From NCBI GenBank assembly GCA_002269645.1, contig NIVC01000142.1, positions 558,001 to 622,000 of the forward strand: 64,000 nucleotides of DNA. Direction: 5' to 3'. Positions within the stretch are counted from its first letter, which is position 1, and every line of letters starts with the position of its first letter. Source of the stretch: Macrostomum lignano (lineage: Eukaryota). Below, in pieces: positions 1,842 to 49,468 of this stretch. Both the position numbers and the translations under genes were made by a program. The notes below the pieces were generated by a model. It ran no database searches, was not told where the DNA came from, and saw only the letters and a list, made by a program, of their open reading frames with translations.

Positions 1842-4800
1842 ATGCCCTTAAAGCTAAAGAACCTGTTTATCGGCATCGTCTCGGCGGGCCTGATAGCCGC
1901 CCTGGCCCTGCTCGGCCTGTCAATCTGGGTTGTCAGCGTCGCTCACGGCCCGCTGTTCGAGCTGATGCAGCTGCTAATGCAGGACCTGCATCCGGTAGGC
2001 GGTTTGAAACTGGCATGGGCTCCGCAAACTCTTCTTGTAGTAGGAGGAATCAACGTGGTTTTAAGCATTTTCTCCATTGCTTGCGGGCTGCTCAGCTGGT
2101 ACGAATGGAGGACCGACAAGGAGCGCGTGATTGTAAGTCATATCGCCTCACTCTTGTACATTGCATGTAGCTTTAACGTACACACACATGCATAGGTATA
2201 CATTGATGATCTTGGGTCATTGGGGTCATTGAATTGCATGCCATGATGTCTATGTCCGAAACCATGCTAGCTTCTGCTGCTTATGCGAGGGGAGCCCAAC
2301 TACAGTAATGGTTCTAATTCATTTCTGCCTGGCACTTTAGTCTGTGGTAATAACGGGCCGTTCTTAAACTGTAGTTTTTTCGCATTAGCTTGAGAGAATC
2401 CTCAAGAAAAGAGCCTATAATATTTATACACGTAAACAATCTCCACTGGCGACATTACTGACCTGGATAGTGCTGAATTTAAATTCATGTCCAAACAGTG
2501 CTCATGAGCCCGTAAAGGTCTTGACCCCAATTACCCCGATAACTTATGGAATCCGGAAGTTTCATATCGCGCGTAGAGACACGCGTTATTTGATGTTCAT
2601 TGTCAATGAAATATTCAGGATTTAGCGACGTTCTGGTATTGACGTATATTTAATAAATGTACTTTTGTTATGCTAGCTAATAGCTCGTAACCATGGATGA
2701 AGGAAGTTGAACTTTTGTTTTCTACGCTGAACAATGCCATAGACTAAAACCGCGGGCACACATTGGATAAATAATCAGGGGTCCCATTGCGTGACAACCC
2801 ATAGACAATTCGTTGTCACGTGCTGCGACCGCTGATTCTTTGCATCGTTTTTCTGTTTGACGATCCTACAGACAATGCATTGTTTGTATTAATGGATTGT
2901 TCTGCATTAAAAATGTGAATAATGATCGTCAAGTTGCACAAAACCGTGCAGGAATGCATTTCTGCGCCTAATGTTTTTTCAGTGAGATTTTACCATAGAC
3001 ATCCATTCCTGCACGCAAAAGAGTGCAAGAATGCCACATTCCTGCATGGAAAATCAGCCGACAATGACGATTCTGAGCGGACCGCAAAAATCATAAGGAC
3101 AAGAAACCGTATACAGAAATCGAAACTCTTAGCAGCCACCTCGACCTTAGCATTCTAAAAATAGCATTAATGAGAAAAGCAGAACTTTCGGTTTCTTAAT
3201 TAAGAAGCTTGAGATAAGCAAAATGGGAAGTAAAAGTAAAATCAGAGATTGGGGAAATTTCGACCTTACGAAAGCGTTCGTTGCTTCGAAACTCTCGAAT
3301 GACATGTTTTGTCAGTAATCCCTCTTTTGATTTTCAGAGTCCCATACTGATGGCGCTTCCCAGCATCCTGGGCTTTGTCAGCATTGGCTTCATGGACAGC
3401 TTCGGCATCAGCCATGACGTAGGCGTCAACAGCGGATTGAGCATGAGAACCAAGCTGGTGATTCTGGACAGGAACTACTTTCAACCGCTGAGCCTGGCAC
3501 TGAAGCAGAACTCTACTACCGAGGCCAAAGTCACCATGATGATTAACCACATGCAAGTGCAGGTAATTTGGAGTTCTTATGTTAATTTGTTGTGGGTGGG
3601 TCTGCATTGAGGTTGGTAGAGCATCTTGAGAACCATACAGGGGAGGTCAATGAAGGTCAAGTCAGAAGTCCTGCAGGGATTAGAGGAACCATGCAGAATC
3701 ATTACAGAAATCTCAGAAACCGTGCAAGCTGAAGTGGATTTAGAGTTTAATAATAAAGCCAGTCGACAATGTAATTACCTCAGCCAAGCAATTGTTGAAC
3801 AATTAACTCATATGCTACAGTTCGAATGCTGCGGAACGAACGGCCCGTCAGACATCACCGGCAACAACACCCTGTGGAGCAGGTCTTCGCCAACCTACAA
3901 CGGCACCCGACAGGTGATACCAGTGAGCTGCTGCCCGATGCTGTCAAAGAGAGCCGGCCTGCTAAGAGACGGATATTGGAACTCCGTTGGGTCGTATTTG
4001 CTGGATCCTGGCTGCCCGAACACAGGCCGCAGCCCTCACAGTCAGGTAAGTGGAAACTGTGTCATCTGATGGACTATGCTTAGCACAGTTACATTTATAG
4101 GGAAATGATGCTCCTCATGAGTATAAATTTGTTTGAAGAGACGACAGCAAAGACATAAATGCAACTACTGCATGTATCTACGAGGTACGTCCTGAATCGG
4201 CAAATTCCAGGCAGCGGAGCCTTTCGACCCTAGGGTCCTTGGAAACTTCACTATAGCAATACCGCTCAGCGTTTGTGTCTCTTCTCTCATCTCTCTTCCT
4301 CAATTCCTCTCTTACCGTAGCCACCGAGGAGGACAAGGGACATGTCCCCCCACCCAGTAAAAGCTAAGGGCCAATGCTTTGTCCCCCCGCCCGTGAGACC
4401 AATTATGGAAACCAGTAATATTACTCCAGGGCGCCGAAATGGGTGCGTTAAAATGAGTGCTGACAACACCGATTTTAAAAATGTAGAAATTTAGTAATTT
4501 AGAATTCTTGACTTTGCCCTCCGCCATAAAATCCATGGCGACGCCCCTGCTTCTCCCTCTCCCTCTCCCATCTGGCCCGCAGCCAAGAGCTAGCTCATCT
4601 GGCCCTCGAGCTAATTACTCTCCGACCCTCCGACCCCTCATCTACCTCATACACACAGACTCGTACTGAAGCTATGGATATACTGTACCGGTATCAATCT
4701 GGCTTGAAAAATTCCTACAGTTAACAGCAGCTTTAATTAGCAATATTCCTGTCAAAACCGTTGAGACCCGTCGAGATGCATCGGATGGTATCGAGCTACT

Positions 4801-7700: not shown

Positions 7701-10700
7701 ATGTCTCAGCAATGGATAAAGAATCTGTTTTTTGTCATCATATCGGCGGGCCTGATAGCCGCCCTGGCCCTGTTCGGCCTGTCAATCTGGGTTGTCAGCG
7801 TCGCTCACGGCCCGCTGTTCGAGCTGATGCAGCTGCTAATGCAGGACCTGTACCCGGAGGGCGGCTTGAAATTGTCAGGGGCTCCGCAAACTCTCCTTGT
7901 AGTGGGCGGAATCAACGTGGTTTTAAGCGTTTTCTCCATCGCTTGCGGGCTGCTCAGCTGGTACGAACGGAGGACCAACAAGGAGCGCGTGATTGTAAGT
8001 CATGATCTTGGGTCAGGTGAGCTAGTTGTTTCAGGACAGAAGAATACTACCTTTAGGGCTCGTATAGTTCCACTTTTGACTTGAAGCCTCACTAATATAC
8101 GAAATGTTGGCAGCAGACAGGCAATGCCACGTGGTGTCTATGTCTGAAACCATGTTTCTGCTTCTTATACATGTAGAGTCTAACAAACAAACTGTATTGA
8201 GAAACCGAAAGTCCAAACCACGGAGTATAGGACGCACCCAGAATGCACAACCGGCATTTCCTTGCGCTGAAAATTGAAACAAAATGTCCTTCTTCCCTTC
8301 AGTTGCAACAGAAGAGTAATTTATGTGCGAGTTCATGGCTACTACAGCTATCTGACTCGGCTGCAATCAGCTCAGCTCCAGTGGTTAATATGGAGATTCT
8401 TCTTTTTATGGTTTTTCAACCAGAAATTAGTTTAAGCAGTATTTAGCATTTAGCATTAAGCTCTGAAGAGAGTATCTCAATAACTCTAATTAAGCACAAT
8501 GTAAAGGTACAATCTGAGCTCGGGGAAATTTCGACCTTACGAAAGCGATCGTTGCTTAGAAACACTCGAATTGCATTTTCAATTTTGGTCAGTAATAACT
8601 CATGAAATCTTTAGAGTCCAATACTGATGGCGCTGCCCAGCATTCTGGGCTTTGTCAGCATTGGCTTCATGGACAGCTTCGGCATCAGCCATGACGTAGG
8701 CGTCAACAGCGGGTTGATCATGAGAACCAAGCTGATGATTCTGGACAGGAACTACTTTCAACCGCTGAGCCTGGCGCTGAAGCAGAACTCTACTACCGAG
8801 GCCAAAGTCACCATGATGATTAACCACATGCAAGTGCAGGCAAGTTGGGGGTTCAATTATGTTAATTTTTTGTGGGTGGGTCTTCATTGAGGTTGGAGGG
8901 GACGATTTGGGAACCACCCAGGGGAGGTCAATGAAGGTCAGGTCAGAAGTATCATGCAAAATCCTTACCAAAATCTCAGAAAATTTGCAAGCGTATTTGC
9001 GTACATATTCCTCAGAAGTGAATTTAGAGTTTGATAAAACCGGTCGACAATGTAATACCTCAGCCAAGCAATTGTTGAACAATAAATTCATCCAGTTCGA
9101 ATGCTGCGGAACAAACGGCTACTGGGACATCACCGGCAACACCACCCTGTGGCACAAGTCCTCACCAACCTACAAGGGCATCCGGCAGGTGTTGCCAGTG
9201 AGTTGTTGCCCGATGCAGTCAAAGAGAGCGGGTCTGCTCAAGGACAGCAATTGGAACTCCGTTGGATCGTATTTGCTGGACCCCGAGTGTCCTAACACAG
9301 GCCGTTATCCGCACAGAAAGGTAATTAGAAACTATGCCAGTAAGCATTCTCACAGATTACGATTCATGCAGTAGTGAAATAGTTCTGCTTTTGTGTACAA
9401 ATTTATCTGAAGAGACGACCCCAAAAACCTCTACACGCCCGTTGATCGGACAACCCGAGAAGGCCCGCGAAGCCAGCTCCCTATCCGGCCCTCGTGTTCT
9501 TTGAAACTTTACAATAGCCATCTTTCAAATAGATCTCTTCTCTCCTCTTTTCTCTCCCATCTGGTCTGCAGCCTGGAGCTATAGCTAATTCTTTATCTGG
9601 CCTCGGGGTTGAAAATCATAGAGTTTGCCGGACCCTGATGCTGATCTACACACAGGCTCGCACAAGCTACGGTTAAACTGTACCTGTACGAGTATCTGGC
9701 AAGAAGGATTACTAAGTGTTAGGAACCCAACCGCGGTCTGTAGTAATATTTCTGTGAAAAGCCTTGAGGCTTGGTTCGCTTGCATTGTAAGATCTTTCAT
9801 CGGGAACGCGCAGGACCCATGCACTCAGCTCAGCGCTCGAAATGGATACAGATAGCAAAAGATAGCTAACAAAATAGATGGCGAGCCCACCGCCTCAAGG
9901 CGCAGGCAGACTCGCAGTGCAGCACGAAGAGCGAGCGCTTGGACAATAGCAGGTAAAGATCGAGTACAGCTGCTCGAGCTCGGCCCATTATAACCTCTAC
10001 GCGTAACCAACCTCCCTCTGCGTGAGACTGCTTTGACAATAGATTCGCAGAGCAAAGCTATTCTCCTGCTCACAACAGTAATTGGCTCATGCCATCCAGC
10101 CCGAATTAATATTGTAGTTAATACGTATTGTTGTTACTCTAAGCGGATAGCGGCAGGATGCGCCGTTCAAATCAGTCAGGAAAGCATTTTTTGGACAGAC
10201 AGACGAAACCCGCTTTATTAGCTTTGATTGGGCAGGACTTTTTCATGTTAAGTTTTGTTAAGGTTATTGAATAAATACAACTAAATAATCAAATACATAT
10301 AAATAAATTGTTTGCGTGCAGGAACGGAGAGTGTCATTCCTGCACGATGTCCATGTGTAAAACAGTGGAGATTTGGCCATAGATTATTTCATTCCTGCAC
10401 GACTGCCTTCATTCCCGCACGCTGGCTCAAATAAGAATGATATATTCCTTCACGCACGAGTGAACGTGAAGGAATTCCATTGTCGGATGATTCATCGTGC
10501 AGGAATGCACAAAACCGTGCAGGAATGCATTTCTGCGCCTAATGCTTTTTCAGTGAGATTTTACCATAGACATCCATTCCTGCACGCAAAAGAGTGCAAG
10601 AATGCCATTCTTGCATGGAAAATCAGCCGACAATGAAACCCCGCCGCTGACAATATTGTGTCCTCAAAAGGCGATGCCAACTTAAGCCATAGCGGAAGGT

Positions 10701-15094: not shown

Positions 15095-15616
15095 TCAAAC
15101 CGGCTTGAAGTCCGGATCCTCCCTGGCGCACTTTAGCAAATAGTTAATCAGGTATTGGGACCTGACGCCCGGTTCAACTCGCGGCACCAGCGGCGGCAGC
15201 TGATTGTCCCGAATCTCCAGCACCTGCAGGCCGGCCGATCCGACCCGATGCAGCCGGGTGTACGGCTTCGAGCTGCCAGCCAGACGGGGCACCAGCTCGT
15301 CGAACATCTTTCGCACTAGCTGCTGGTTCTCCAACCAGAAGAATGCCAGGTCGCGCATAGCGGGATTGTCCGGCCCGAGCAGCGTGGCTTTGTGCAGCAG
15401 CAGCTCAGAGTACTGCTGAGTGTTCACCGCCACAGGGCGATCGTTGAACTCTAATCGCTCCTTAGCAACCAGGGCGGAAACTGAGTCTCTGATTAGCAGC
15501 AGGCGGCCAAGTTGGCCGGTGCCAAAGCCCATTGGAGCGTCGATTCGCACCTGCTTTCTTGGAAAATTGAACCGCATCCTGGTAGCGGCAGATTTTGCTG
15601 CCGCAGTTGCAGACAT
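15095..15616 (-). CDS. MRPL17: Mitochondrial ribosomal protein L17 (bL17m), 173 aa, single coding exon
   Basis: Motifs match the bL17 family: 'GRLLLIRDSVSALVAKERLE', 'AMRDLAFFWLENQQLVRKMFDELVPR', 'YTRL', 'VLEIRDNQLPPL'. Arg/Ala-rich N-terminal presequence. Confidence 0.92.
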   Translation of the reverse strand: MSATAAAKSAATRMRFNFPRKQVRIDAPMGFGTGQLGRLLLIRDSVSALVAKERLEFNDRPVAVNTQQYSELLLHKATLLGPDNPAMRDLAFFWLENQQLVRKMFDELVPRLAGSSKPYTRLHRVGSAGLQVLEIRDNQLPPLVPRVEPGVRSQYLINYLLKCAREDPDFKPV

Positions 15617-15829: not shown

Positions 15830-16070
15830 AATTAGAGGATTGGACTACATAGTAGGGAACTGAAGAGGCTTGGATTACCCAGGGAATTAGAGAGACTTGG
15901 ACTACACAGGGAATTAAAGAGGCTTGAATTACACAGGGAATTAGAGAGACTTGGACTACACAGGGAATTAGAGGCTTGAATTACACAGGGAATTAGAGAG
16001 ACTTGGACTACACAGGGAATTAGAGGCTTGGATTACACAGGGAATTCGAGAGGCTTGGATTATTCAGGGA
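15830..16070. repeat. Minisatellite, 25-27 bp units (GGACTACACAGGGAATTAGAG...)
   Basis: About 8 imperfect tandem copies upstream of MRPL17. Confidence 0.85.
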
Positions 16071-16677
16071 ATTTCTTAGGAAGAGTAGATAGCTTAGAGG
16101 ATTAGAGAGCTAACTACCCAGGGAAAAGGAGATACTTAGAAAACATTCATAATAAAAACACAAACTACTAGTATATATTTGACACTAGTTAAAAAGCTTA
16201 GAAAAATAGATTGGTGTAAATTATTTCAACTTGTAAGTTATAAAATGGATTAATTATAAAAACAGTAGCAAACAGCAAAAAGTTTTAACAAATTGACATG
16301 TCAAAATTAACTATTAACCAATAAAAAACAATGCTAAAGACTTTGTTTGTACAAAAAATAGAATGTGACTAAGTTGTCAACTGAAATTTGAGATACAACT
16401 GGCACAAAGTGACGCACCGCATTTAAAATTAGCTGCCAGAGCGAGTTAAACAATTTTATAATTGTGTATATTGTTAAGACACGACAAAAATATTATAAGA
16501 TTAATCGAATAAGTAAAACACGTTAAAGAAAAACAGACAAGGAATTGGATAACAAAATTCGCCGCATCAGTCACATGGAGGAAGGAATAACATGGCCTGT
16601 GCTAGTCTGAGTCAGGTAGTCTTGCTTTGAGTGTTTTATCCATTTCTAGCATCCTTGTTCCGTTCCCGTTCAATGCA

Positions 16678-17593
16678 TTGTCAGCTGACTGCCATAGACA
16701 ATTGCATTCTATTGTCAGCTGATTGCCATAGACAATTGCATTCTATTGTCAGCTGATTGCCATAGACAATTGCATTCTATTGTCAGCTGACTGCCATAGA
16801 CAATTGCATTCTATTGTCAGCTGATTGCCATAGACAATGCCATTATATTGTCAGCTGATTGCCATAGACAATTGCATTCTATTGTCAGCTGACTGCCATA
16901 GACAATTGCATTCTATTGTCAGCTGATTGCCATAGACAATGCCATTATATTGTCAGCTGATTGCCATAGACAATTGCATTCTATTGTCAGCTGATTGCCA
17001 TAGACAATTGCATTCTATTGTCAGCTGATTGCCATAGACAATGCCATTATATTGTCAGCTGATTGCCATAGACAATTGCATTCTATTATCAGCTGACTGC
17101 CATAGACAATTGCATTCTATTATCAGCTGATTGCCATAGACAATTTCATTCTATTGTCAGCTGACTGCCATAGACAATTGCATTCTATTATCAGCTGATT
17201 GCCATAGACAATTGCATTCTATTATCAGCTGATTGCCATAGACAATTTCATTCTATTATCAGCTGACTGCCATAGACAATTGCATTCTATTATCAGCTGA
17301 TTGCCATAGACAATTGCATTCTATTATCAGCTGACTGCCATAGACAATTGCATTCTATTATCAGCTGATTGCCATAGACAATTGCATTCTATTATCAGCT
17401 GACTGCCATAGACAATTGCATTCTATTATCAGCTGATTGCCATAGACAATTTCATTCTATTATCAGCTGACTGCCATAGACAATTGCATTCTATTATCAG
17501 CTGATTGCCATAGACAATTGCATTCTATTATCAGCTGACTGCCATAGACAATTGCATTCTATTATCAGCTGATTGCCATAGACAATTGCATTC
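16678..17593. repeat. 34-bp tandem satellite, about 27 copies
   Basis: Unit ATTGTCAGCTGATTGCCATAGACAATTGCATTCT repeated head to tail with no spacers. Confidence 0.97.
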
Positions 17594-17941: not shown

Positions 17942-20098
17942 TCACATGACTGAACACCAACTCTTGTTGCCAGTCTGTACTGACTCCAAAGAATCATTGG
18001 CAGCGCTTGTCGACGAGGCGGCCTCGCGAACAGTGCTGCTGGAGTCCAGCGTCATCTCGTGACACTCAACCACAGTTGTCAGCTTGCGGCGGGCCGCCGG
18101 CGTCTGCTGACGCCGCACAACGCCGCCGCCGGAAACGCCAGCCGGCGGACTGTCAAACTGGGAACCGGAACTCGACGAAGCGATGAACTGGACTGAGCGA
18201 GCGCTGGACTTCCTGGAGCTGCTGGTAGATTGTCTCTGCGAAGGCTTAGACTTGGCCGCAATCGACTGCCGCTTCGAGGTCGACTTGGCTTTCACAGCCG
18301 AGCTGGAGGCGGTGGCGGCGCCCTTTGAAGTTTTCGCCACAGCCTGGCGACTGCGAGACATTGCGACAGACTTTGATGGCGACTTTTTAATTATTGTGGC
18401 CTCCTTGACTGGGTTGGCGGCGCCCTTTGAAGTCTTGGCCACAGATTTGCGGTTTCGCTTTGGTGGCGGAGAGGCGGCAGCCTTTGAAGTCTTGGCCACA
18501 GATTTGCGGCTTAGCTTTGGTGGCGGAGAGGCGGCAGCCTTTGAAGTCTTGGCCACAGATTGGCGGCTTCGCTTTGGCGGCGGAGAGGCGGCAGCAGTTG
18601 AAGTCTTGGCCACAGATTGGCGGCTTCGCTTTGGCGGCGGAGAGGCGGCAGCCTTTGAAGTCTTGGCCACAGATTGGCGGCTTCGCTTTGGCGGCGGAGA
18701 GGCGGCAGCAGTTGAAGTCTTGGCCACAGATTGGCGGCTTCGCTTTGGCGGCGGAGAGGTGGCAGCCTTTGAAGTCTTGGCCACAGATTGGCGGCTTCGC
18801 TTTGGTGGCGGAGAGACGGCAGCCTTCGTTGGCGACTTTTTAACAGTTTTAACTTTGGCTGGGCTGCCAAAAAACGACTTAGGAGATTTACGCGCAGTTG
18901 CGGTCGGGCGACGGCGTTTAGCTGGGGAGGCGGCAGCGTCGACCGCTTTGCGCACAGGACTAACGCTAATTTTGCGCTTCCTTGGCTTGGCTAAGGCGGC
19001 AGCGACTATCGGCTGCGAGCTGGGTGAGAGAGGTGGGAAAATTAGAAAATTAGCAATAGACTTGATTCTGGTGGGGTATTTAAGTATGCGATTCTGGTGG
19101 GGTATTTTGGGTATGCCATTCTGGTGGGGTATTTTGGGTATGCCATTCTGGTGGGGTATTTCGAGTATACGATTTTGGTGGGGTATTTTGGGTATGCGAT
19201 TCTGGTAGGGTATTTTGGGTATGCCATTCTGGTGGGGTATTTTGGGTATACGATTCTGGTGGGGTATTTTGGGTATGAAATTCTGGTGAGGTATTTTGGG
19301 TATGCCATTCTGGTGGGGTATTTTGGGTATGCGATTCTGGTGGGGTATTTTGGGTATGCGATTCTGGTGGGGTAGTTCCACATATGATTGATATTCGAAT
19401 CGCTATTTTTACTTCTGCATTCTTGAGTGGAGCCTAAGGATTGTTTCTATGATAGGGTTTTGAAGACAGAAGTGCCAGTCGGGCTATATTTTAGGGGTTG
19501 CCGTTTTTCAGGGGTCTTTCTAGCAGCTGCTTTTGTACTTAATATATTATACTTTACTAATCTCAGGACACATTCTTGTTGAAAAAGCATAAATATTAGG
19601 AATCCAAAAGCTTACGAAAGCGGCTGCTCTTCTTCTATGCGCATTTGCCTTGAGGCTGACTTCATCACTGTTGTTTTAGAAGTCAAATTCGTGCCGGAAT
19701 CGGAAGATGACGTCATAGTAATTTCCTGGCTGCGAGCAGCAGACGTTGTCATGGCAACAGTGCGACGCCGAGAAGTCTTGGCAGCAATGGGCGATAGCTT
19801 GCGTCCGGCCAGTGTACTTAAGTTAGACAGATCACTGCAGAGTTCAGCAGGGACATGAGTAAGAGAGATTGAATAAGATTAAAAAACAAACATTTAAGAT
19901 AAACAAATACCTGGCTGAAACCTTGCTTGGCCCCAATGTCCTTGTGCGTACAGGCGAAGCCCTAGTTGAGGACAATTTTTTGCTACAATTAAAATAGAGT
20001 GATAGAGTGATATAGTACTTTAAAAATGAATCATTTAACATTGCAAAAATTTTTTTATGAACATGGTAAACTTACCTTTGCTGTTTAGAAGTCATCAT
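17942..20098 (-). CDS. Uncharacterised basic, low-complexity S/T-P and K/R-rich protein (463 aa) with 7x19-aa repeats and C-terminal CaaX (CSVM)
   Basis: Exons 20098-20076, 19982-19911, 19834-19616, 19019-17942 join in frame (all phase 2, GT-AG): MMTSKQQSKKLSSTRASPVR...SPPPKRSRQSVAKTSKAAA x7...GNKSWCSVM*. Similar in composition to a histone H1 tail, but no globular H1 domain is recognisable. Confidence 0.85.
18425..18812 (-). repeat. Coding 57-bp tandem repeat (7 copies)
   Basis: TTGAAGTCTTGGCCACAGAT recurs every 57 bp and encodes SPPPKRSRQSVAKTSKAAA. Confidence 0.95.
19066..19376. repeat. 27-bp intronic minisatellite (about 11 copies)
   Basis: Unit GCGATTCTGGTGGGGTATTTTGGGTAT lies in intron 3 of the CaaX gene and creates the false 'IPKIPHQNR' ORF extension. 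Confidence 0.93.
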
Positions 20099-21912
20099 AA
20101 ATAAATTTAAACTGAAAGGTACAATGGTTACAATTAAATGTAAACAAATTTAACTTACATCAATCTAAAAATTTTATGACTAGAAAGCATGCTATAAGCT
20201 TGGTATTTTCAGTCAAAACTAATTTTAAAAGCTGAAAAAGATGTAATTAAAAGACTTTCTTTTAAAAGCTAATGACAAAAATGCAAGCCATAACTATAAG
20301 GCTCTTTGGTATATCTATATATAAATTTTGTGCTGATCTCTCTGTTTGTCTGTCTTTGATTTTCTTGAGAACTATCTGGCTAGTTTTTTCTAATTAGTTT
20401 AAAAATTGTAATTACTCAACAATTCAGCCAAGCCAGCCAAGGTACATCACAAAAATGCCCATCTGAAAAACAAGTAATCTGCACATAGTACTAATTAGAT
20501 TATGAATCACTTAGCATTAATAATATAGTTATAGTTACTTTTATCATTTGCCCAAAATTGCAAAATTTAAAAGGTGGAGTTGTGGGCCTTGAAAAGTATA
20601 ATCATTGTAATCTATTCCATTGTCTATTATAAGACCTGCTATCACTCTCTAGGCGGATCCAGAATGTGCTATGATAATTCAATGCAATTCAGAATGCAAT
20701 TTGATATGATCAATAAACAGTCATTAGCGCTCAAGTAACATGCGAATAAGCAATGATTAAAATAAAGTAGCTTATAGATAGCCCTAGGCTTTAGCTCTAT
20801 ATAGGTCCTTGCCATGATATATAGCCCCAATCAATTTGGTTTTGTACTCTAATTTTACAAACTTCACTGACTACTAACATTCATGGCTCTATCACACTAC
20901 AATTGTCATAGTTAAACAAGTTGAATAAAAGATTATAGACAAACAAATAATTCCATTCCTTATGTTTTATAGTAGTTATATGTTATCCTTAAAAAACCAC
21001 TTTAGACAATCAAATAACCAAAATTCACAAGAATTCAAAAGCAACTTTTTTGTCTTAATATAGACATATTTCTGTGGCAATGACCATCATACCTATTAAA
21101 ATTTATCTTATTTGCTTCTAAAAAAGACAAGTTCCAAAATATTTTTCTATAAACTATAAATATGATATAGACTTGTTATTTTAGGACCAAAAATAAGTAT
21201 AAATGGTATTTTTTCATATGCCAATTCAGCATTATATCTTGAAACCTATAATCATCACCATACTCTGGATCATGTAGTTTATGCCCAAAAATTTAAGTAG
21301 GCATTGGCCTTGCATAGGGCCTACCAAGAGTTAGACATGCATAGTAGTTGGCATGTATCACTCTTAAAAACATGTGCATGCCATAGTTCAAAAGGCTACA
21401 TATATGCTAGGATTCCCAAGCATACAATAAGGGTCTTACCATCATTTTTCAGCATAAATCAGGGTATATTCTAAGCCTAGTACAGGCCCTACACATGACA
21501 CAGCAGATAGGCCCTATATTAGGCCTATGTCAAAAACCAATTTTTTGTATTGGTGCACAATCCTAGGACCTAGCATATAAGCAAGGTCTTGTCATTTTTT
21601 CTGGCATTAAACCTGGCATAGGCCTACACTAATACACAATCCAAAGTATGGTGTGCATGTATACTTGGCATAATGGCATGCACTTGATAGAATCACTTAA
21701 GAGTTAGTGTTAGGTAGAAAAAAAGATAAAGAATTTCATTTTGAAGTATAAATTTCAAACTTTCTAGGGTTTTTAAACTTGTAATAAGGTTTTAAATGTT
21801 TGCATGGATCAATTTTCTGCTATAATTATAAGTGGTATAGACAAAAAGGCAAAAAGCAACCAACTTATCAGCTAAAAAGGGTCCCTTATAAAACCTAGTC
21901 TAGTCTAGTCAG

Positions 21913-27279: not shown

Positions 27280-28181
27280 GATAATCGCGCCGTGTACACT
27301 GTAAAGCTGTTTGAAAGGTGCCTTGACAATGCTAAAAGGTCCGTCGCACTTCAAGATTCGTCGTCGGGTTGATGATATTTCTCGCTGAGAATTGTTGTCA
27401 TGAAGACGAAGTGTCGCGGCCGTTTGTCTCAGGAACTGTCACATCCTGCAAATGAAACTGGGCAGGTACATGTCTAGGATCAACTTGGAAATGTACGTCA
27501 ACAGGTTCCATAGGCGATCTTTTTTGCGACTGTAACATTGCGACTCAATGACTCAATACCTGCACTTCAGGTAAAAATTCTCTTACCTCTAATAATTATT
27601 AATTCTAGCAACAAACTGTTATTAAATAACATGCGCTTTGCTCCCTCCTTTACTTCCTTTGCTGCCTTTCTCTTCTGAGCTGGCCGATCAACTGGATCGC
27701 ACGTGTGCGGAGCAAGGGCTTCTATGGTCCCATCAGCCCGGCGGACTGCGGAGCCATGACAGTGCAGTGATAAACGCTTATTGCAGCGATAGTACGTGTT
27801 GCCATTTCGCCGCGTTTTTTCATCCATCAGATAGCCAAGGTCTCGTTGGGCATACTGCACTAGAAGGTCTTTTCCGTGACTGCATCCTGCATCTGTAAGA
27901 ATTTCAAAGGGCTGGGGAGGTGGGCTGCGGGGCGGTGCCAGCTCTGCTGGAGGAATTTGAATGGATTCTTCCAGAGCTGGATCAGGGTCATTGAAATCTG
28001 GATAATGGTAAATAAAATTTTCCGCTTGTGCCGGAATCAGATGCACTGGTTCTGGATTTTCAGCAGGCAGAGGAACAGCCGCTGGTCCAGAATTCAGGGC
28101 TTGTCTAACATGTACCACTGCAGCATCTGCAGTTTGAGATTGAGACACTGCTAAGTTGTCTCGGCCTAGTGAAGAGTTCAC
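27280..28181 (-). mobile_element. Degenerate Mutator-like (MULE) transposase with FLYWCH zinc finger
   Basis: ORF 27567..28181 contains 'GYLMDEKTRRNGNTYYRCNKRLSLHCHGSA...APHTC' (FLYWCH-type). The minus strand at about 27289-27354 reads 'LKCDGPFSIVKAPFKQLYSVHG', matching the MULE catalytic 'DGTFK..PF.QLY.IH' block. Frameshifted and truncated. Confidence 0.75.
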
Positions 28182-33930: not shown

Positions 33931-36900
33931 CACCCAAGCATGTTTTCTAACCAATAGTAGTTATCAATCTGAGATGTCAGTGCTAATGTAAGAATCACTG
34001 AGATATCAAGGCTTAGGTTAGGCTTTTAGAGAAAAATTTCCAAGATGTTAAAGTTGACATAAGAATTGTTAGGAAATCAAGGCTAAAAGATAAAGGCTAT
34101 AAAGCTATATAAGGCTATAAGGCTATTTAAAAATTTTATTTAATTTTTTTGTTGCTTCTCCAATTGGGAAACATTGTGTTATGGGGGTATAAACTTCTAT
34201 ATCTTAATCCTACTAGTAAGCCATTAGGCTGTCACAGGGCTCTTGGTTCTCCTTTCAAAATCTTACCAAGTTGCCATTAAGTTGTAACAGTTTTATTCTT
34301 ATGTAATATCTTGATGTATTTTTGGTATTATACTTTTTACTAGTAGTGTATCATATATATTTGTTTCCAAATCAGTAGCATATTACATACTATAAGCCTG
34401 AGTAGTCTTATAATACTTGTATTTATATCTTATCTTATATCTTAGCTCTCTTTTATTGGGGGTTTTTCTCTCAGTCTGGGCATTTACTGGGATCAAAGAG
34501 TCACTCTTACACTCTAGGTAGGTTTTTTGCCCTAAGGCAAAGTCTCAGATCCTGGTCTAGATATGCTTACACTTTGATAGGAGTTCTGCCTTATAAGGCA
34601 ATTTCTTTGTCCTAGATACTAAATCTGGAAGTCTCTAAAAATAGAGTATCTTGGCTATTTCTAGTTGTTATCTAGTACTCAAAATAAGTAACATAAGAGC
34701 AAGTACTAGCCCTAAGGCTGGTTGATTTTATCTCCAAATAGAATAACTGGAGAGGTGCTCAATCAATATTAAAGCACAATTTAAGCTTAGGAATAAGGGA
34801 ACAATTGAACAATTAATTTGAGTTGGCTTTTAGATAGCTCTTATTTATACTAAAATTTTCTTTATTATTTAGAACAAAAATAATGTCTAAAAAAGATACA
34901 ACACATTTATAATTTTTTACAGTATAAAAAATGGTGGAGCTTTGAAATCATAGTAAAGTTATATACCAAATGAAGCCTATTACAATTGATGATAATTACT
35001 TATTACAATATCAGTATAAAGCTTCAGTTGAATCCTGATATGATCATGATATGATATGATATGATCCTGATTATGATATTTATCATATTTAATCCTAAAA
35101 GTTCTAGTATTATCCAACTTTTTATATGTATATAATTAAAAAGATATCTAAATTGTTGGTCATTGAGAAGTTTTTTATAATTTTATAAAATATGACAAGT
35201 TAAAAAGAAAAGCAATTATATTTACTCAACAAAATAGTTACCCCTAGCTATAACAATAGCCTTCTAATAAATTATAGGCCATTCTGAATTAGATCTATAA
35301 AATTGGTCATTTTTGGATTAAAATCCTATGATCCCATATTTAAGTTGTACTTCTGGGGATTTTTTGACCAAAATTTGGTTAGAAAAATAAAAGATAATTG
35401 CAAAAGAAACATCTTAGGCTATAAACTAAATATGACAACATCTTCCAGCCTAGCTGCTGCAGATACTGAACTTCCAAGTTTAAATTTAGAAAGCAAAAAG
35501 ATACATTTTTTTAATTTTGTTGTTTCCATTTCATACATATATATCATTGGTTGAAATAATAATCAGAATGTCCAATGTAATTCATTCAAAAGTGTGTATC
35601 CTTTTGTGTTCCTTTTTATTCATTGTTATGTCTGCTAGGTTTAACATTTGTCCAAAATTTATGGATCATTAAGTTTATTATACATTAAGCTATGTTTTTT
35701 AAGTAATAACTGCTGTTTAACATCTTTTATCTGGGCAACATTTTTTGTGATTGTTTTTAATAGCAAGGGTTTACTGTTTTAAAAAGTGAATTCTAAAATA
35801 TTTGTTAGTAGGTTAACTGGCTTAAAATTTGGTTTTTAATTTGCTTGTTGTGTATGTCAGATGTAGTGAATATTATAACATGCTGTCAGACATTTTCTTG
35901 GCAGGGCCTGTTGCAAGTAGCGCTCAGCCATTGAATTTTTCACTCAATTCCTATAGCTTTCCCTCCCTATAGTAGCTGTGAACTGACAACAATTAGGTCT
36001 TTAACTAAGAAAACAAACCCTGCATGCATGTTTCTCTCCCCCCTTTGACTGCTAGTTAAGGGCCTGGCTTAACCTCTTGCTCTAGACACACGATTTGCCA
36101 TTGGCTAAGGAGTAAAGGCCCCTGTTTTTATGCCCAAGTGCTGGCTGGGGGGAGTGCAGCCGGCTGTTGAGTGACTGGCCACCCACTGTGCCCCCCTCGC
36201 TGTTGCTGCTGCATGTATTCTGTCGCCGAATATCTAGCACGGCCTTCCCTATCCCCCCTTATTCCCTTTCTTCGCCATTTTCCTCGTCTCTCTACCCTCG
36301 CGCCCGTTACCCCCCCCCCGCTATATTTTTTTAACGCCAGCTCGTATAATGGCTTCAATAAAAAAGTTGAATAGCAAAGGCGGAACAGAAGTCACTGAGT
36401 GACAGTGAGCGGAAGGGGGGAGACAGTCCTCTCACCACTCCCCCGGCATGGATCGGGGGTTGAGGGAGGGTAGTGCAGCGCTAGGAGGATCGGGTGTTGT
36501 CGTCGGTCTATGCAAAGCCGGAGCCAACCAGAGTCGCCGAGGGGTTCACAGGAAAGAGAGACACAGACGTTGGGTGGGGTTTGGGGTGCGTCAAGCTGCA
36601 GAGAGTTGCCGACTGCTTGTAGGCCATGCTAGACACTGAAATACGTATGCTGCACACACATGACACCAGTGTTAATTTAGGAAGTCTTCAAAACTGCGTC
36701 GTCCGCCCGCCCGACCGCCTCCCTCCTTTTGCCCACCACCTCCGCCGCCTTATATTTCTCTGTCCGTCTCTCAACTTAGCCGCCTATAAATCGGCGCTCC
36801 TCGGGGCTTCCCTGGCGCTTTATTAAAACAAAATAGAAAGTGGAAGCACAATAGCAACAAATTGCCAGCTTTGCGGTGCAGTTTGACAATGCGCGGTCAA

Positions 36901-36980
36901 GGCTGCAGTTCCTTAGACGCGGCTCCAGCGCAGTAAATGACCCGTCGTCAGGCCCCCCTATCCAACTGGGCAGCCGTCAG

Positions 36981-39900
36981 ATGTGGCCGTTTAACCGGCA
37001 CAGTAAGAGGCGCCATCGTTCATCTTCGTCAAATTCTTCGTCCGCAGGTCAGCAAAGGGCGGCGGCAGCGGCCGGCACCGCCGAGCGGACGCTGCGCTGG
37101 CAGTTCTCCCAGGTGAAAGGCACAGCCTGGGAGGCGGTCAACGAGCAGGATATAATCTCCTGCGTTGAGTTCAACCACACTGGCGAGCTATTGGCCACCG
37201 GGGACAAAGGCGGCCGGGTGGTGGTGTTCCAGCGGTCGGACAGCGGCCTGTACAATGTCTATTCGACTTTCACTAGCCACGAGCCGGAGTTCGACTACCT
37301 GAAATCGCTGGAGATTGAGGAGAAAATTAATAAAATCCGCTGGTTACCCGGCCATTATCGGGCCAATTTTCTGCTATCAACTAACGATAAGACCGTAAAG
37401 CTGTGGCGCGTCAGCGAGAAGGACCGGGCCCTGGAAGCTGTGGAATCCGATCCCAATGCCAACGCACAAGCCCTGCGCCTGCCCCGCTACGTTCCCGCCG
37501 AGCTGATAGTCGAAGCCGCGCCTCGCAGAATATTCGCCAACGCGCACACCTACCATATCAATTCGATTTCTGTTAATAGCGACCAGGAGACATTCCTTAG
37601 CGCCGACGACTTGCGTGTGAACCTGTGGCACCTGGGCATCACGGATCAGAGTTACAATATTGTGGACATCAAGCCCAACAATATGGAGGACCTCACCGAG
37701 GTGATCACAGCCGCCGAGTTCCATCCCAGCCATTGTCATCTGTTCCTGTACTCCAGCAGCAAAGGCTCAATCCGCATGTGTGACATGCGCCAGCGGGCCC
37801 TGTGCGACCAGCACGTTGGCATCTTCGAGGAGGCCGACGATCCCTCTAGCCGGTCGTTTTTCTCCGAAATCATTTCATCTGTTAGCGATATAAAATTCTC
37901 CCATTCCGGTCGCTACATACTCAGCCGGGACTATCTTCAGTTGAAGGGTGAGTTTTGGGATAATTAAAGCTTTATTTGCCAATATTCTGCTTTTCTTCAG
38001 CAGAAGAAGCATGTGTCTTATTTTGCTTTTTGGAGATTTTGGGTACATACTGCAGTTCTCATTGATTCGTTTTCTCATAGATTCGATTCTGATTTATTCG
38101 GGTTCTCATAGATTCGTTTCTGATAGATTCGGGTTCTGATAGATTCGTTTCTGATAGATTCGGGTTCTCATAGATTCGTTTCTGATAGATTCGGGTTCTC
38201 ATAGATTCGTTTCTGATAGATTCGGGTTCTGATAGATTCGTTTCTGATTGATTCGGGTTCTGATAGATTCGTTTCTGATTGATTCGGGTCCTGATAGATT
38301 CGGGATCTCATAGATTCGTTTCTGATAGATTCGGGTTCTGATAGATTCGTTTCTGATAGATTCAGGTTCTGATAGATTCGGGTTCTCATAGATTCGTTTC
38401 TGATTGATTCGGGTTCTGATAGATTCGTTTCTGATTGATTCGGGTTCTGATAGATTCGTTTCTGATTGATTCGGGTCCTGATAGATTCGTTTCTGATTGA
38501 TTCGGGTTCTCATAGATTCGTTTCTGATAGATTCGGGTTCTGATAGATTCGTTTCTGATTGATTCGGGTTCTGATAGATTCGTTTCTGATTGATTCGGGT
38601 CCTGATAGATTCGGGATCTCATAGATTCGTTTCTGATAGATTCGGGTTCTGATAGATTCGTTTCTGATAGATTCGTTTCTGATAGATTCGTTTCTGATAG
38701 ATTCGGGTTCTGATAGATTCGTTTCTGATTGATTCGGGTTCTGATAGATTCGTTTCTGATTGATTCGGGTTCTGATAGATTCGTTTCTGATTGATTCGGG
38801 TCCTGATAGATTCGGGATCTCATAGATTCGTTTCTGATAGATTCGGGTTCTGATAGATTCGTTTCTGATTGATTCGGGTTCTGATAGATTCGTTTCTGAT
38901 TGATTCGGGTTCTGATAGATTCGTTTCTGATTGATTCGGGTCCTGATAGATTCGTTTCTGATTGATTCGGGTTCTGATAGATTCGGGTCCTGATAGATTC
39001 GGGATCTCATAGATTCGTTTCTGATAGATTCGGGTTCTGATAGATTCGTTTCTGATTGATTCGGGTTCTGATAGATTCGTTTCTGATTGATTCGGGTTCT
39101 GATAGATTCGTTTCTGATTGATTCGGGTCCTGATAGATTCGTTTCTGATTGATTCGGGTTCTCATAGATTCGTTTCTGATTGATTCGGGTTCTGATAGAT
39201 TCGGGTTCTTATAGATTCGGGTTCTCATATATTCGTTTCTGATAGATTCGGGTTCTCATAGATTCGGGTTCTCATAGCTTTGGGTTCTCATAGATTCGTT
39301 TCTGATAGATAGATTTGGATTCTGTTAGATTCGGCTTCTGATAAATTCGGGTTTTCATAGATTCGGTTCTCAAAGATTCGGTTCTCATAGATTCGGTTCT
39401 CATAGATTCGGTTCTCATAGATTCGAGTTCATTTAGGTTCTATGAATGTTCGAGTTTGTGCCGCTTGTAATTCGTATGATTACTAAATAATGAATATTTT
39501 TAGCGTTGGTATTAGTGGCGGCTATATCGCTATAAACTATCTGCAGTTCATTGAGCATGAATAGCTAGTTGAATATACTGCTAGGAGCTAAACTGGATAA
39601 GAGGCGATGGCGTGTCAAGCCGCTTTCCTTACTCAGCTAAGGCGGCCTGTCTTGAGTCCAGAAATTGAGTTATACATCTTGCCAATGGAAGGGGAAATGT
39701 AGTCTTTGGGGATCTGGAGACAGGCAAGGGAGCTCACCTATAGGTAGGGGAGGCGGGGGAACGGGTTGCTAATTGAATCTCGTAAGGAGCATTGGCCAGT
39801 CTGAGCACAAAATAATACTAGGGGAATGAGCGCATACTCATCCCTGCTCTGCACTGTGTGCAAGACTATAGGATCAACACTATGCCATAAGAAAGCAGGC

Positions 39901-42900
39901 GGCCATATAACAGATATCAGACGATGAAAGAGAAGATAGATGGAGTGAGAAGAACCGGCCGTTGGGACAAAATGGGACAGTTCGATGCAGACGGTAATTT
40001 AAGAGTGAATTATAGGATTGCACAGGCCTGGGAGGCTGCCGCTGCTGCTGCCGGACGGGGATGGCTGGCAATTTTTCTGCTCTACTGGCTTGCCCAAATC
40101 CGCCTCTCCGTTCCCATCTGCTGTGCTGCTCTCCCCACTGTGTCCATCTTATCCAGCACATGCAGATGCAGCAGATGGTTTTTTAGAGAAAAAAAAGGGA
40201 GAATAAGAAGTCACCGCTGTTGGGGGGGATAAGGATTAAAAGGATCTTTTCTTTATAATCAGGCGGCTCTGGGACTTTCCTCAACTGCAGCGGGGGAGAC
40301 TTCCTCCCCCCCTGCTGCTGCAGCTCTGCAGCTTCGATTTCTCTCCGTATATAATGAGTGAGAAGGACAGGCGCTACAATTTGCCTATAGTTTCTGCTTC
40401 TGCTAGCCTAGCTGTCTTCTCAACCCCCCAGCTCCTCGGGCTGTCACGCACCGATTTCATCCCTGCTAATCCTCATCCCAGCAGCCCAGTTATCCTCAAG
40501 GTGTGCGCGTCTCTACTTAACGCCAATGCACAATGCTCGCGTGTTTACGCGGCCCCATCTGTGCGGCTCGGTTCCAGATGATGAAAGAGGGCGAGTTGGG
40601 ATGTAAAGAAAGAAAATTGCGGAGGCAAGATTAGCCCAGCCCCCTCCCTCCCTCCTAGCTTTCTCCACCTCCCGCACTTCGCTTTACTCCTGCCTAATCC
40701 CTGTAATTAACGAGTTCCGTAGAGACTAAACAGGTAGCTGGCTAAGTACAGGGCAGCGGAGTGGCACTGATGAATGCTTTCTGTTCGGTTCTCTTTTTTC
40801 ACTACAAGAAAATCTGCAGGTTAATTTTTCTGGCCTATACTTACCTCTGCAGAGTCTATTGGCTAGATTTATACTTTATTTTCCTTGCTGGGATTGAAGG
40901 CTTTGACTGTGCTTATTCGCTAGTTTTTTGTCTTTGCGTCATTGCTATGCACAGATGACGCTTGGTGCACATTGCGAGACTGTCTATTCTCTCCGAGTCT
41001 TTCTGAGTGCTTTCCGGAGTTCTGCTTCTGCTTCGCTTCTTCTTCATGTCTCGCCTTTTCTCCTTTCCCTTCTCTCCTTCCCCTTCTCTCCCTCCCCTAC
41101 TCTTCCTCTCCTTCTCTCCTTCCCCCTTCTCTCCTTCCCCTTCTCTCCTTCCCCTTCTCTCCCTCCCCTTCTCTCCTTCCCCCTTCTCTCCCTCCCCTTC
41201 TCTCCTTCCCCCTTCTTTCCCTCCCCTTCTCTCCTTCCCCCTTCTCTCCCTCCCCTTCTCTCCTTCCCCCTTCTCTCCCTCCCCTTCTCTCCTTCCCCCT
41301 TCTCTCTCTCCCCTTCTCTCCTTCCCCTACTCTCCTTCCCCCTTCTCTCCCCTTCTCTCCTTCCCCCTTCTCTCCCTCCCCTTCTCTCCTTCCCCCTTCT
41401 CTCTCTCCCCTTCTCTCCCTCCCCTACTCTCCTTCCCCCTTCTCTCCCCTTCTCTCCTTCCCCTTCTCTCCCTCCCCTACTCTTCCTCTCCTTCTCTCCT
41501 TCCCCCTTCTCTCCTTCCCCCTTCTCTCCTTCCCCTTCTCTCCTTCCCCCTTCTCTCCTTCCCCTTCTCTCCTTCCCCTTCTCTCCTTCCCCCTTCTCTC
41601 CCTTCCCTTCTCTACCTCCCCTCTCTCCCTCCCCTCCTCTCCCCTTCTCTCCTTCCCCTTCTCTACCTCCCCTCTCTCCCTCCCCTCCTCTCCCTCCTCT
41701 TCTTTCCCTTCCCTTCTCTCCCACTCCATCTACCAGTCTTATCGTCCCACTTTCCGCCTGTGTATATGTAGCCTCCTTTTGACTACAACACTGCTATATT
41801 TCTTTGTTCACGTTTTAGTGTGGGACCTGAACATGGCAACCAAACCCGTGGAGGTCTACCCGGTGCACGAGCACTTCAGGCGAAACCTGTGCGCTCTGTA
41901 CGAGAATGACAGCATCTTTGATAAATTCGAGTGCTGCTGGTCTGGCGACGACAGGTGAGCTCAAGTCACAGATTGGTGACGTTGAAGTTGAAGAAAGAGA
42001 GTAGTAAACGGAAATTAAGGGGCGAGAATCCAGAGAAGCAGAGCAGGAGACAGGGAGATAGAGGGGTGAGAATCGAGAGAAGTAGAGCAGAAGACAGGGA
42101 GATTGAGGGGTGAGAACCGAGAGAAGTAGAGTAGGAGACAGGGAGATTGAGGGGTGAGAACCGACAGAAGTAGAGCAGGAGACAGGGAGATTGAGGGGTG
42201 AGAACCGACAGAAGTAGAGCAGGAGACAGGGAGATTGAGGGGTAAGAACCGACAGAAGTAGAGCAGGAGACAGGGAGATTGAGGGGTGAGAATCCTGAGA
42301 AGCAGAGCAGGAGACAGGGAGATAGAGGGGTGAGAATCGAGAGAAGTAGAGCAGAAGACAGGGAGATTGAGGGGTAAGAACCGAGAGAAGTAAAGCAGGA
42401 GACAGGGAGATTAAGGGGTGAGAACCGAGAGAAGTAGAGCAGGAGACAGGGAGATTGAGGGGTGAGAATCCTGAGAAGCAGAGCAGGAGACAGGGAGATA
42501 GAGGGGTGAGAATCGAGAGAAGTAGAGCAGAAGACAGGGAGATTGAGGGGTAAGAACCGAGAGAAGTAGAGCAGGAGACAGGGAGATTGAGGGGTGAGAA
42601 TCCTGAGAAGCAGAGCAGGAGACAGGGAGATAGAGGGGTGAGAATCGAGAGAAGTAGAGCAGAAGACAGGGAGATTGAGGGGTAAGAACCGAGAGAAGTA
42701 AAGCAGGAGACAGGGAGATTAAGGGGTGAGAACCGAGAGAAGTAGAGCAGGAGACAGGGAGATTGAGGGGTGAGAATCCTGAGAAGCAGAGCAGGAGACA
42801 GGGAGATAGAGGGGTGAGAATCGAGAGAAGTAGAGCAGAAGACAGGGAGATTGAGGGGTGAGAATCCTGAGAAGCAGAGCAGGAGACAGGGAGATAGAGG

Positions 42901-46285: not shown

Positions 46286-46620
46286 AGCTATCCTCCCAGA
46301 TCCTCAGGTTGAGCAGCAGCTACCCTCCCAGATCCTCAGGTTGAGCAGCAGCCACCCTTCTAGATCCTCAGGTTGAGCAGCAGCCACCCTCCCAGATCCT
46401 CAGGTTGAGCAGCCACCCTCCCAGATCCTCAGGTTGAGCAGCCACCCTCCCAGATCCTCAGGTTGAGCAGCAGCCACCCTCCCAGATGCTCAACTTGAGC
46501 AGCAGCCACCCTCCCAGATCCTCAGGTTGAACAGCAGCCACCCTCCCAGATGCTCAGGTTGAGCAGCAGCCACCCTCCCAGATGCTCAGGTTGAGCAGCA
46601 GCCACCCTCCCAGATCCTCA
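46286..46620. repeat. 32-bp (with 29-bp variants) minisatellite, about 11 copies
   Basis: Unit CCACCCTCCCAGATCCTCAGGTTGAGCAGCAG. Confidence 0.93.
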
Positions 46621-47151: not shown

Positions 47152-47735
47152 TGTTGAGATGTTTACCTTCCCCACCCATCCTTCAGGGAGATTTTTACCT
47201 TCCCCACCCATCCTTTACGGAGATGTTTACCTTCCCCACCCATCCTTCAGGCAGATGTTTACCTTCCCCACCCATCCTTCAGGCAGATGTTTACCTTCCC
47301 CACTCATCCTTCAGGCAGATGTTTACCTTCCCCACCCATCCTTCAGGCAGATGTTTACCTTCCCCACCCATCCTTCAGGCAGATGTTTACCTTCCCCACC
47401 CATCCTTCAGGGAGATTTTTACCTTCCCCACCCATCCTTTACGGAGATGTTTACCTTCCCCACCCATCCTTCAGGCAGATGTTTACCTTCCCCACCCATC
47501 CTTCAGGCAGATGTTTACCTTCCCCACCCATCCTTCAGGCAGATGTTTACCTTCCCCACCCATCCTTCAGGGAGATCTTTACCTTCCCCACCCATCCTTC
47601 AGGCAGATTTTTACCTTCCCCACCCATCCTTCAGGCAGATGTTTACCTTCCCCACCCATCCTTCAGGCAGATGTTTACCTTCCCCACCCATCCTTCAGGC
47701 AGATTTTTACCTTCCCCACTCATCCTTCAGGGAGA
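47152..47735. repeat. 32-bp minisatellite, about 18 copies
   Basis: Unit GATGTTTACCTTCCCCACCCATCCTTCAGGCA. Confidence 0.95.
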
Positions 47736-48420
47736 TACTTGCCTTGCCCATCGAGCCTTTAGGGAAAATATTTCCAAAGAGATTCATAATTGAATTTTTG
47801 CCACAATGGTGAAATAGATGCAGATGACGTACAAAAACGAACGCCAAGTTGTTGTTCGCGGTGGGCTATCCCGCCTTCATTTTGTATGTAGTTTAATTAT
47901 GTATTTTGCTTCACCTGTTCTCCGCCTGCGCACCAATATCCTGTGCCGTGCGGTGCAAATTGGCTCACACCAAAGCTGTGCGCAGATGTGCCCCAACATT
48001 GCACCGAGTGACCTTCCTACGTTGTCTGTGTTCCAGCAGCCGGATTTTTGCTATCCCGAATTGTCTCACTGTCTATTCTATTCTAGTGAAGATTATAACT
48101 ATTTGGAATGGACAATATTTGCTCTATTGTATCCTGTGTGCTTTATGTGTCTTGCTTTAACTACTTTTGTCTCCTCTGTCCGCCCAAAAGTCACTTACGC
48201 TTCTAAGAACATTGAAAATAAAGCACAAAAATCTATCTTGGCAATATTATTATATACCCGTATTGTTATTTATATAGGCTAATTATCGTAGCGTTAATTT
48301 TTCTTATTGAAAATTTTCTTGGTTGCACCAGGATTGCAAAAACAAACAGGAGCGATTCTTTTGTGTTATTATTCATCTTTGCGCAGCGTTCACTGGATGT
48401 ATGTAACCTTTAAACTTACA

Positions 48421-49214: not shown

Positions 49215-49468
49215 GGGTTTGGCCCACAGACTATCTCACTGTGACAATTCAATCTCAGCTATATAACCATCGCTGCTATGGGAGCCGGGGTTTGGCCCAC
49301 AGACTATCTCACTGTGACAATTCAATCTCAGCTATATAACCATCGCTGCTATGGGAGCCGGGGTTTGGCCCACAGACTATCTCACTGTGACAATCCAATC
49401 TCAGCTATATAACCATCGCTGCTATGGGAGCCGGGGTTTGGCCCACAGACTATCTCACTGTGACAATC
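49215..49468. repeat. 73-bp tandem repeat, 3.5 copies
   Basis: TTTGGCCCACAGACTATCTC recurs at 49218, 49291, 49364 and 49437. Confidence 0.95.

Follow-up and report, generated by a model that had tools for sequence, protein, structure and literature searches.

The closest described counterpart of the gene considered here is Kugelkern (Kuk, also Charleston), a Drosophila protein of 570 amino acids (aa) with a coiled coil, a nuclear localization signal (NLS) and a C-terminal CaaX box, whose cysteine is needed both for localization to the nuclear membrane and for nuclear shaping, the C567S mutant being nucleoplasmic (PMC2947476). A GFP-NLS-CaaX construct (GFP, green fluorescent protein) binds liposomes once farnesylated and alters nuclear shape, and as of that 2010 paper Kugelkern was the only known farnesylated nuclear protein besides lamins (PMC2947476). 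The precedent it sets is that a lipidated protein that forms no filaments is enough on its own to make the nuclear envelope grow and lose its shape. The gene at issue lies on the minus strand of a 64,000-nucleotide (nt) stretch of the flatworm Macrostomum lignano, positions 558,001 to 622,000 of contig NIVC01000142.1 in assembly GCA_002269645.1 (the whole stretch being referred to as the window), and would encode a 463-aa basic repeat protein that ends in the CaaX box CSVM. From its motifs the product is predicted to be a non-lamin farnesylated nuclear protein, so far found only in M. lignano, and the best reading, though a tentative one to which somewhat less than an even chance is given, is that it is a nuclear, farnesylated polycation bound to the envelope.

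With Kugelkern the likeness is one of design: neither is a lamin, their sizes are comparable (570 versus 463 aa), and each combines an NLS-type cluster with a farnesyl-type CaaX, at the level of motifs in the case of the candidate. However, no sequence relationship is detectable (the conserved blocks of Kuk are residues 353-404 and 453-473), Kuk is reported only from Diptera, it requires an N-terminal coiled coil (residues 137-184) whereas none is predicted in exons 3-4 of the candidate, a weak negative, and it has not been described as the kind of tandem-repeat polycation that the candidate is. Orthology to Kugelkern was rejected because the candidate is a flatworm gene; judged by sequence, it would be an analogue and not a relative. 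With B-type lamins the candidate has in common a basic NLS, here as a motif, and a C-terminal CaaX, and CSVM is itself listed as the CaaX of the lamin of a copepod, Lepeophtheirus salmonis (PMC10125929). In contrast to lamins, it has neither an intermediate-filament rod nor the lamin-tail Ig fold, and so the mechanism by which lamins build a lamina is not available to it. By analogy, the candidate would work most like Kugelkern or a lamin tail while being a member of neither family, since searches for homology and for a coiled coil, a rod or an Ig fold were all negative.

The absence of a lamin rod, an Ig fold and an H1 globular domain, remarked on in a preliminary description of this DNA, held: neither Pfam nor AlphaFold2 yielded a lamin rod, a lamin-tail Ig fold or an H1 winged helix (PF00538). 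Exon 4 was modelled with no helices at a mean predicted local distance difference test score (pLDDT) of 43, and exon 3 with a single 7-residue helix, no predicted coiled coil and a predicted template modelling score (pTM) of 0.14. These were single-sequence runs on an orphan protein, covering exons 3 and 4, and negatives from them are weak. No Pfam family was assigned at E <= 1-10, exon 3 included, and a phmmer comparison with the sequences of the PDB gave no match. The modelling suggests a protein that is intrinsically disordered, with which its composition agrees. Identity with Mlig-sperm1 was rejected, as the Mlig-sperm1 family has a conserved folded domain.

That four exons join cleanly into 463 aa, as had been claimed, was confirmed, with all introns being GT-AG and the joined coding sequence (CDS) 1392 nt long (Table 1). 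Exon 4 closes with TGG TGT TCA GTC ATG TGA, i.e. with the W-C-S-V-M-stop that had also been described. The junction into exon 4, EEQPLS/SQPIV, is matched by a UniProt model of the gene (P0001, introduced below). Use of an alternative, nearer acceptor for exon 2, at 19961, would lead to a 456-aa product, and the 463-aa form is preferred because its N-terminal junctions match P0001 and a second UniProt model, P0002, exactly. The 479-aa open reading frame (ORF) that appears in a mechanical listing is due to the 27-bp minisatellite of intron 3 leaving the frame of exon 4 open upstream. When codon usage was scored after training on three neighbouring genes, the proposed frame was the best of the six in all three non-repeat segments, exon 3 among them. 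Attention is drawn to an acceptor-like TTTCAG 13 nt upstream of the start (window 20099-20114), where the recorded gene span starts and which, by its sequence, could belong to a 5′-untranslated-region intron or be a spliced-leader acceptor. A real, lineage-restricted protein-coding gene of M. lignano is considered very probable.

The gene is present in three near-identical copies, each upstream of mRpL17, on three contigs of GCA_002269645.1 (L004, L005 and L006, the last being NIVC01000142.1, which agrees at every base with window 25616-5095 and is hence the window copy); papers citing that assembly describe the species as a neopolyploid. With the same splice landmarks, L004 and L005 give 425 aa with 5 repeats versus 463 aa with 7 repeats in the window, and the suggested variability of repeat number is thus seen between homeologous copies. 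Outside the repeats the three proteins differ at a single residue (A/T at 144), and the C-terminal 157 residues, CSVM included, are identical. Differences in CDS length are exclusively multiples of three (a 114-nt repeat indel) and are accompanied by a few substitutions, while introns and flanks show one 1-nt indel together with indels in 27-bp and 34-bp repeat units, the length of intron 3 being 725, 562 and 596 nt in the three copies. Overall the copies are ~99% identical, introns and flanks too, the exception being the upstream kilobase of L004. In that kilobase (window ~20099-21098) L004 is 6.4% diverged, L005 and L006 differ by 0.2%, and the gene body is ~99% identical in all; the way in which the neopolyploid is built from subgenomes may be responsible, or else gene conversion. 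Shortly beyond the 3′ end of the gene comes a 34-bp tandem array (16677-17593) whose length varies among the homeologous contigs, and the distance from the candidate to mRpL17 is 1707, 2014 or 2325 nt.

These features are pertinent to a sceptical and improbable reading, in which there is no functional protein-coding gene at all, the ORF being a by-product either of GC-rich minisatellite DNA or of a locus that is decaying or does not code for protein, with the motifs as artefacts of composition. The maintenance of frame across four exons via canonical splice sites, with junctions common to independent gene models, is not what such a locus would lead one to expect, nor is a non-repeat CDS of ~1 kb that is intact in three copies with length changes only in multiples of three, nor codon usage that is best in the proposed frame in every non-repeat segment. 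On its side are the 15 strong tandem-repeat rows in the window (some overlapping), a repeat region that is open on both strands (with a plus-strand ORF of 341 aa), repeat variants that lack codon-position bias, the failure to find homologues outside M. lignano and the absence of the full-length product from the protein collection.

The gene had been called unannotated, which is true of one part of it. UniProt entries A0A1I8HHC7 and A0A1I8GLD5 (P0001 and P0007; 239 aa) and A0A1I8HPS3 (P0002; 234 aa) are truncated models that cover its N-terminal half, sharing the N-terminus and all three junctions of the candidate and ending within the repeats, short of the CaaX. In addition, a 429-aa product with the stop coordinate of the candidate is on record at all three loci. 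It is taken as the same gene, being known from length and span alone, because the recorded spans at L004 and L005 equal the 425-aa model plus 12 nt upstream, and because, for the copy in the window, the recorded product falls short by 38 aa, the length of two repeats. The CaaX-bearing C-terminal part is contained in no retrievable protein; none of the predicted sequences of 425, 429 and 463 aa is in the protein collection, and the contig index has no entry for P0001.

One of these entries, P0002, bears the name ‘PP1-binding domain-containing protein’, and from it comes the proposal, considered very improbable, that the product is a chromatin adaptor for PP1 in the manner of Ki-67 or RepoMan (domain PF15276). 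The likeness is that these too are basic, disordered, chromatin-type proteins, and that the sole RVxF-type match of the candidate, RSVQF, is followed by FD..PP, so that RSVQF then QFDSPP bears a loose resemblance to RVSF...FDENLPP in Ki-67 and RVTF...FDESLP in RepoMan, both as given by PDB entries 5J28 and 5INB. However, the spacer is 9 and not 8 residues, FDSPPAG stands in place of FDE[NS]LP, and LPPxxPL, which belongs to the KiR motif, has no counterpart. The sister entries P0001 and P0007 do not carry the name, nothing in Pfam, PF15276 included, is matched at E <= 10 by P0001, P0002 or the protein of the window, and phmmer gave no match to PDB sequences, 5J28 and 5INB included. The P0002 segment KRSTLPPPQLNAVARPQLR is the same DNA (window 18860-18975) translated out of frame, and the return to the true frame appears to be via a 14-nt GT..AG pseudo-intron, GTAAATCTCCTAAG. 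As the segment is out of frame and rejoined by a pseudo-intron, the name is probably artefactual and due to an indel that the older assembly contains. With Pfam and the PDB negative, and an RVxF match present in 14% of shuffled sequences, the PP1-binding lead was rejected.

The candidate C-terminus reads NKSWCSVM, and its cysteine is one of only two in 463 residues. CSVM fits the pattern of farnesyltransferase substrates (cysteine at -4, an aliphatic a2, and Met, Ser, Gln, Ala or Cys as X at the true C-terminus), for which the chance from composition is 0.06%, a cysteine at -4 being expected in 0.4%. That a CaaX with X = Met is a canonical farnesyl signal, as the preliminary description had it, agrees with the occurrence of the same box in the copepod lamin and, as experimentally established, at the C-terminus of human Rheb, where CSVM directs farnesylation and then RCE1 processing (PMC7255682). 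If the protein is real, its farnesylation is likely on this motif evidence.

Whether such an end leads to the nuclear envelope or elsewhere depends on its surroundings. Charges towards the C-terminus nearly cancel, the net value being -1 for the last 20 aa and +1 for the last 60, and the other cysteine is 36 residues upstream of the CaaX cysteine with no palmitoylatable cysteine nearby; because of this near-zero local charge and distant cysteine, the usual second plasma-membrane signals are absent next to the CaaX. Rheb is like the candidate in this respect, with an identical CSVM and no adjacent second membrane signal in either, and residence of Rheb on endomembranes, together with the very large positive charge of the candidate, could be taken to indicate a farnesylated protein of cytoplasmic membranes (endoplasmic reticulum, Golgi, lysosome or plasma membrane) held on acidic lipids by farnesyl plus polybasic charge, as are K-Ras4B or Rheb, and not nuclear. 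That the NLS-like clusters are within the expectation from composition is also in keeping with this. Nevertheless, the basic residues are distant from the CaaX, the palmitoylation option is missing, and the candidate, unlike the cytoplasmic and endomembrane-associated Rheb, has no GTPase domain and has NLS-like clusters, with the classical monopartite KPRKRK and KRRR among them, and a location on cytoplasmic membranes is accordingly considered a poor prospect. A feature of the same end, of low confidence, is a weak beta hairpin that AlphaFold2 pairs from VECHEM (aa 422-427, 18053-18070) and KSWCSV (aa 457-462, 17945-17965), with pLDDT ~60-68, that would bring the only two cysteines of the protein together.

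In composition (S 20%, A 15%, K 12%, R 9% and P 9%; isoelectric point ~12; net charge +81) the body of the protein is similar to the tails of histone H1 and to SPKK-containing sperm proteins, which are, as is well established, S/P/K/A-rich disordered polycations with S-P-x-K motifs that double as sites for cyclin-dependent kinases (CDK). It differs from them in lacking a winged helix and any strict SP[KR][KR], in a K+R content of only 21%, and in having the CaaX, which is absent from H1 and SPKK proteins. Its full CDK-type sites, six in all, are present in the numbers previously given (SPVR and SPAK twice each, SPTK and SPSK once each); with the repeats collapsed to one unit they compare with 1.2 expected in composition-preserving shuffles (p ~0.001). 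The seven 19-aa repeats also were as described, being underlain by a 57-bp tandem array (18416-18826, 7.2 copies). Of the two NLS-like clusters described earlier, KPRKRK and AKRRRP, the presence was borne out, though not their being anything beyond what so basic a composition gives by chance. From its sequence, nuclear import of the product is nevertheless judged likely. A search of the protein for HP1 (PxVxL), PIP-box, AT-hook, SILK and KEN motifs found none. The stretch RRKLTTVVE (window 18065-18091, aa 415-423) fits the destruction-box pattern RxxLxxxx[NDE] and is a possible degron for the anaphase-promoting complex.

Everything beyond the gene model, i.e. expression, import, farnesylation, envelope localization, DNA binding, regulation by phosphorylation and any role, the suggested one in sperm or stem cells included, is inferred, and the following sequence of events is proposed. 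KPRKRK and AKRRRP, and the KRSR of each repeat, would drive importin-dependent nuclear import. Farnesyltransferase would modify Cys460 of CSVM, with subsequent trimming of -SVM and methylation of the cysteine. Because no second plasma-membrane signal adjoins the CaaX, the farnesylated end is proposed to insert into the inner nuclear membrane, as is the case for lamin NLS-CaaX constructs and Kugelkern, and given both farnesylation and import, the motifs make association with the nuclear rim fairly likely. The S/P/K/A-rich, H1-tail-like body with its 5-7 copies of the 19-aa repeat would bind chromatin or nucleic acid electrostatically, and a weaker hold is what phosphorylation at the six full CDK-consensus sites would bring about. 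An extreme in this regard, and a rather unlikely one as a whole, is a farnesylated polycation specific to flatworms, arisen de novo or diverged beyond recognition, that has converged on the solution of Kugelkern and lamin tails, tethering chromatin to the inner nuclear membrane by a lipid anchor in place of a transmembrane or filament protein, with a DNA-binding valency set by repeat number (5 versus 7) and a CDK switch utilized, for instance, in neoblast division or in the elongation of the spermiogenic nucleus.

Several considerations weigh against an envelope-bound farnesylated polycation. The repeat-less protein and the N-terminal 173 aa, used as queries, found no homologue outside M. lignano, their matches being confined to the truncated models of that species, and when the C-terminal 157 aa were compared exhaustively by HMMER with 1.84 billion representatives there was no credible match. 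(The only match of that segment, P0003, comes from short metagenome contigs as a repeat ORF and was judged spurious; it has the string FDSPP in common with the candidate, its score being inflated by three repeated stretches.) The cysteine at -4 is identical in the copies, though those compared are just three ~99%-identical homeologs of one genome, and since their introns and flanks are equally ~99% identical the agreement is of almost no evolutionary weight. In shuffles, the NLS-like basic clusters are no commoner than composition predicts, and a strongly basic protein might equally go to nucleoli or to acidic membranes. Variants among the 17 repeat units of the three copies are 2 synonymous versus 8 nonsynonymous and evenly spread over codon positions, and by this lack of codon-position bias the 19-aa repeats appear to be of recent origin or else under weak constraint. 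Minisatellites are unusually abundant in the window, for which reason the array may be a neutral by-product, and no canonical AATAAA was found within 700 nt downstream of the stop.

Much of this is shared with a doubtful but still appreciable alternative, that of a soluble nuclear, nucleolar or sperm-chromatin basic protein of H1-tail or SPKK type, whose CSVM is fortuitous, unused, or has a role in protein contact as in Spindly or CENP-F. An H1-tail-like composition with SPxK motifs and no fold is what it would predict; it is also in keeping with an orphan gene whose repeats are weakly constrained, with support for the cysteine that is limited to near-identical homeologs, and with many germline-enriched genes of M. 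lignano being Macrostomum-specific (PMC5816591). The C-terminus itself is what such a protein would leave to coincidence: it is identical to a validated farnesylation signal, it comes after a flexible hydrophilic linker, and a CaaX-like end is seldom expected from the composition, as given above. From the specificity of farnesyltransferase, CaaX motifs of the CSVM type are generally modified when accessible. Were the CaaX unused, the product would be merely another lineage-specific basic disordered protein. Should the envelope-bound, farnesylated reading be correct, it would be a second case, unrelated to Kugelkern and in a lophotrochozoan, from which the design of NLS plus CaaX plus disordered body would be seen to evolve repeatedly, and, with a body that looks built for nucleic-acid binding, it would be a minimal lipid-anchored tether between chromatin and envelope. 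As M. lignano, a transparent animal, is amenable to transgenesis and to knockdown by RNA interference, the idea is cheap to test.

Table 1. Features of the candidate gene and of its surroundings, in window coordinates (slashes mark exon boundaries).
Feature	Position	Strand	Details
Exon 1, 23 nt	20076..20098	-	ATG ATG start at 20098; donor AG/GTAAGT; N-terminus MMTSKQQS also in UniProt models P0001 and P0002
Exon 2, 72 nt	19911..19982	-	Acceptor TTGTAG/CAAAAA, donor CAG/GTATTT; SKKLSST of the longer form present in P0001 and P0002; exons 1-2 encode 32 aa
Exon 3, 219 nt, S/T-rich	19616..19834	-	Acceptor CTGCAG/, donor TTC/GTAAGC
27-bp minisatellite inside intron 3	19064..19374	-	Tandem-repeat scan
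Exon 4, 1078 nt with TGA, aa 105-463	17942..19019	-	Acceptor CACCCAG/; basic clusters, repeats, tail, CaaX
NLS-like basic cluster KPRKRK, aa 116-121	18971..18988	-	Motif scan
NLS-like basic cluster AKRRRP, aa 138-143	18905..18922	-	Motif scan
Seven in-frame 57-bp / 19-aa repeats SPPPKRSRQSVAKTSKAAA, aa 174-306	18416..18814	-	KRSR in each repeat
RSVQF, only RVxF-type match, aa 379-383	18185..18199	-	Probably chance; such a match in 14% of shuffles
CaaX box C-S-V-M, aa 460-463	17945..17956	-	Followed by TGA at 17944-17942; same in all three homeologs
mRpL17, single exon (Pfam Ribosomal_L17)	15095-15616	-	Same encoded protein on three contigs of GCA_002269645.1
Two similar tetraspanin exon ORFs, ~5 kb apart	3626-4069, 8859-9374	+	Pfam Tetraspanin, under gathering score (partial)
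ORF, FLYWCH zinc-finger match (weak)	27567-28181	-	E 0.0045, under gathering score
Large WD40 ORF	36876-37967	+	WD40 repeat match
ORF, CAF-1 subunit A dimerisation domain	50621-51541	-	Strong match, E 9e-26
Minisatellites, periods 14-73 bp	e.g. 15864-16073, 16677-17593, 38056-39425, 41050-41722, 42010-43182, 43620-44327, 46292-46620, 47157-47750, 49215-49471		

Neither Rfam nor a tRNA scan gave any match in the window. Elsewhere in it, the two tetraspanin ORFs are similar enough to suggest a tandem duplicate, and the equivalent position of L005 has a called tetraspanin gene of 302 aa. The large WD40 ORF, matched at the level of the WD40 repeat, looks by eye like a PP2A B55 regulatory subunit, which it may resemble. 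Long ORFs opposite the CAF-1 ORF have the appearance of compositional artefacts. Several of the minisatellites make long spurious ORFs on both strands, and among the minisatellites is the candidate's own coding array, whose period of 57 bp happens to be a multiple of three.

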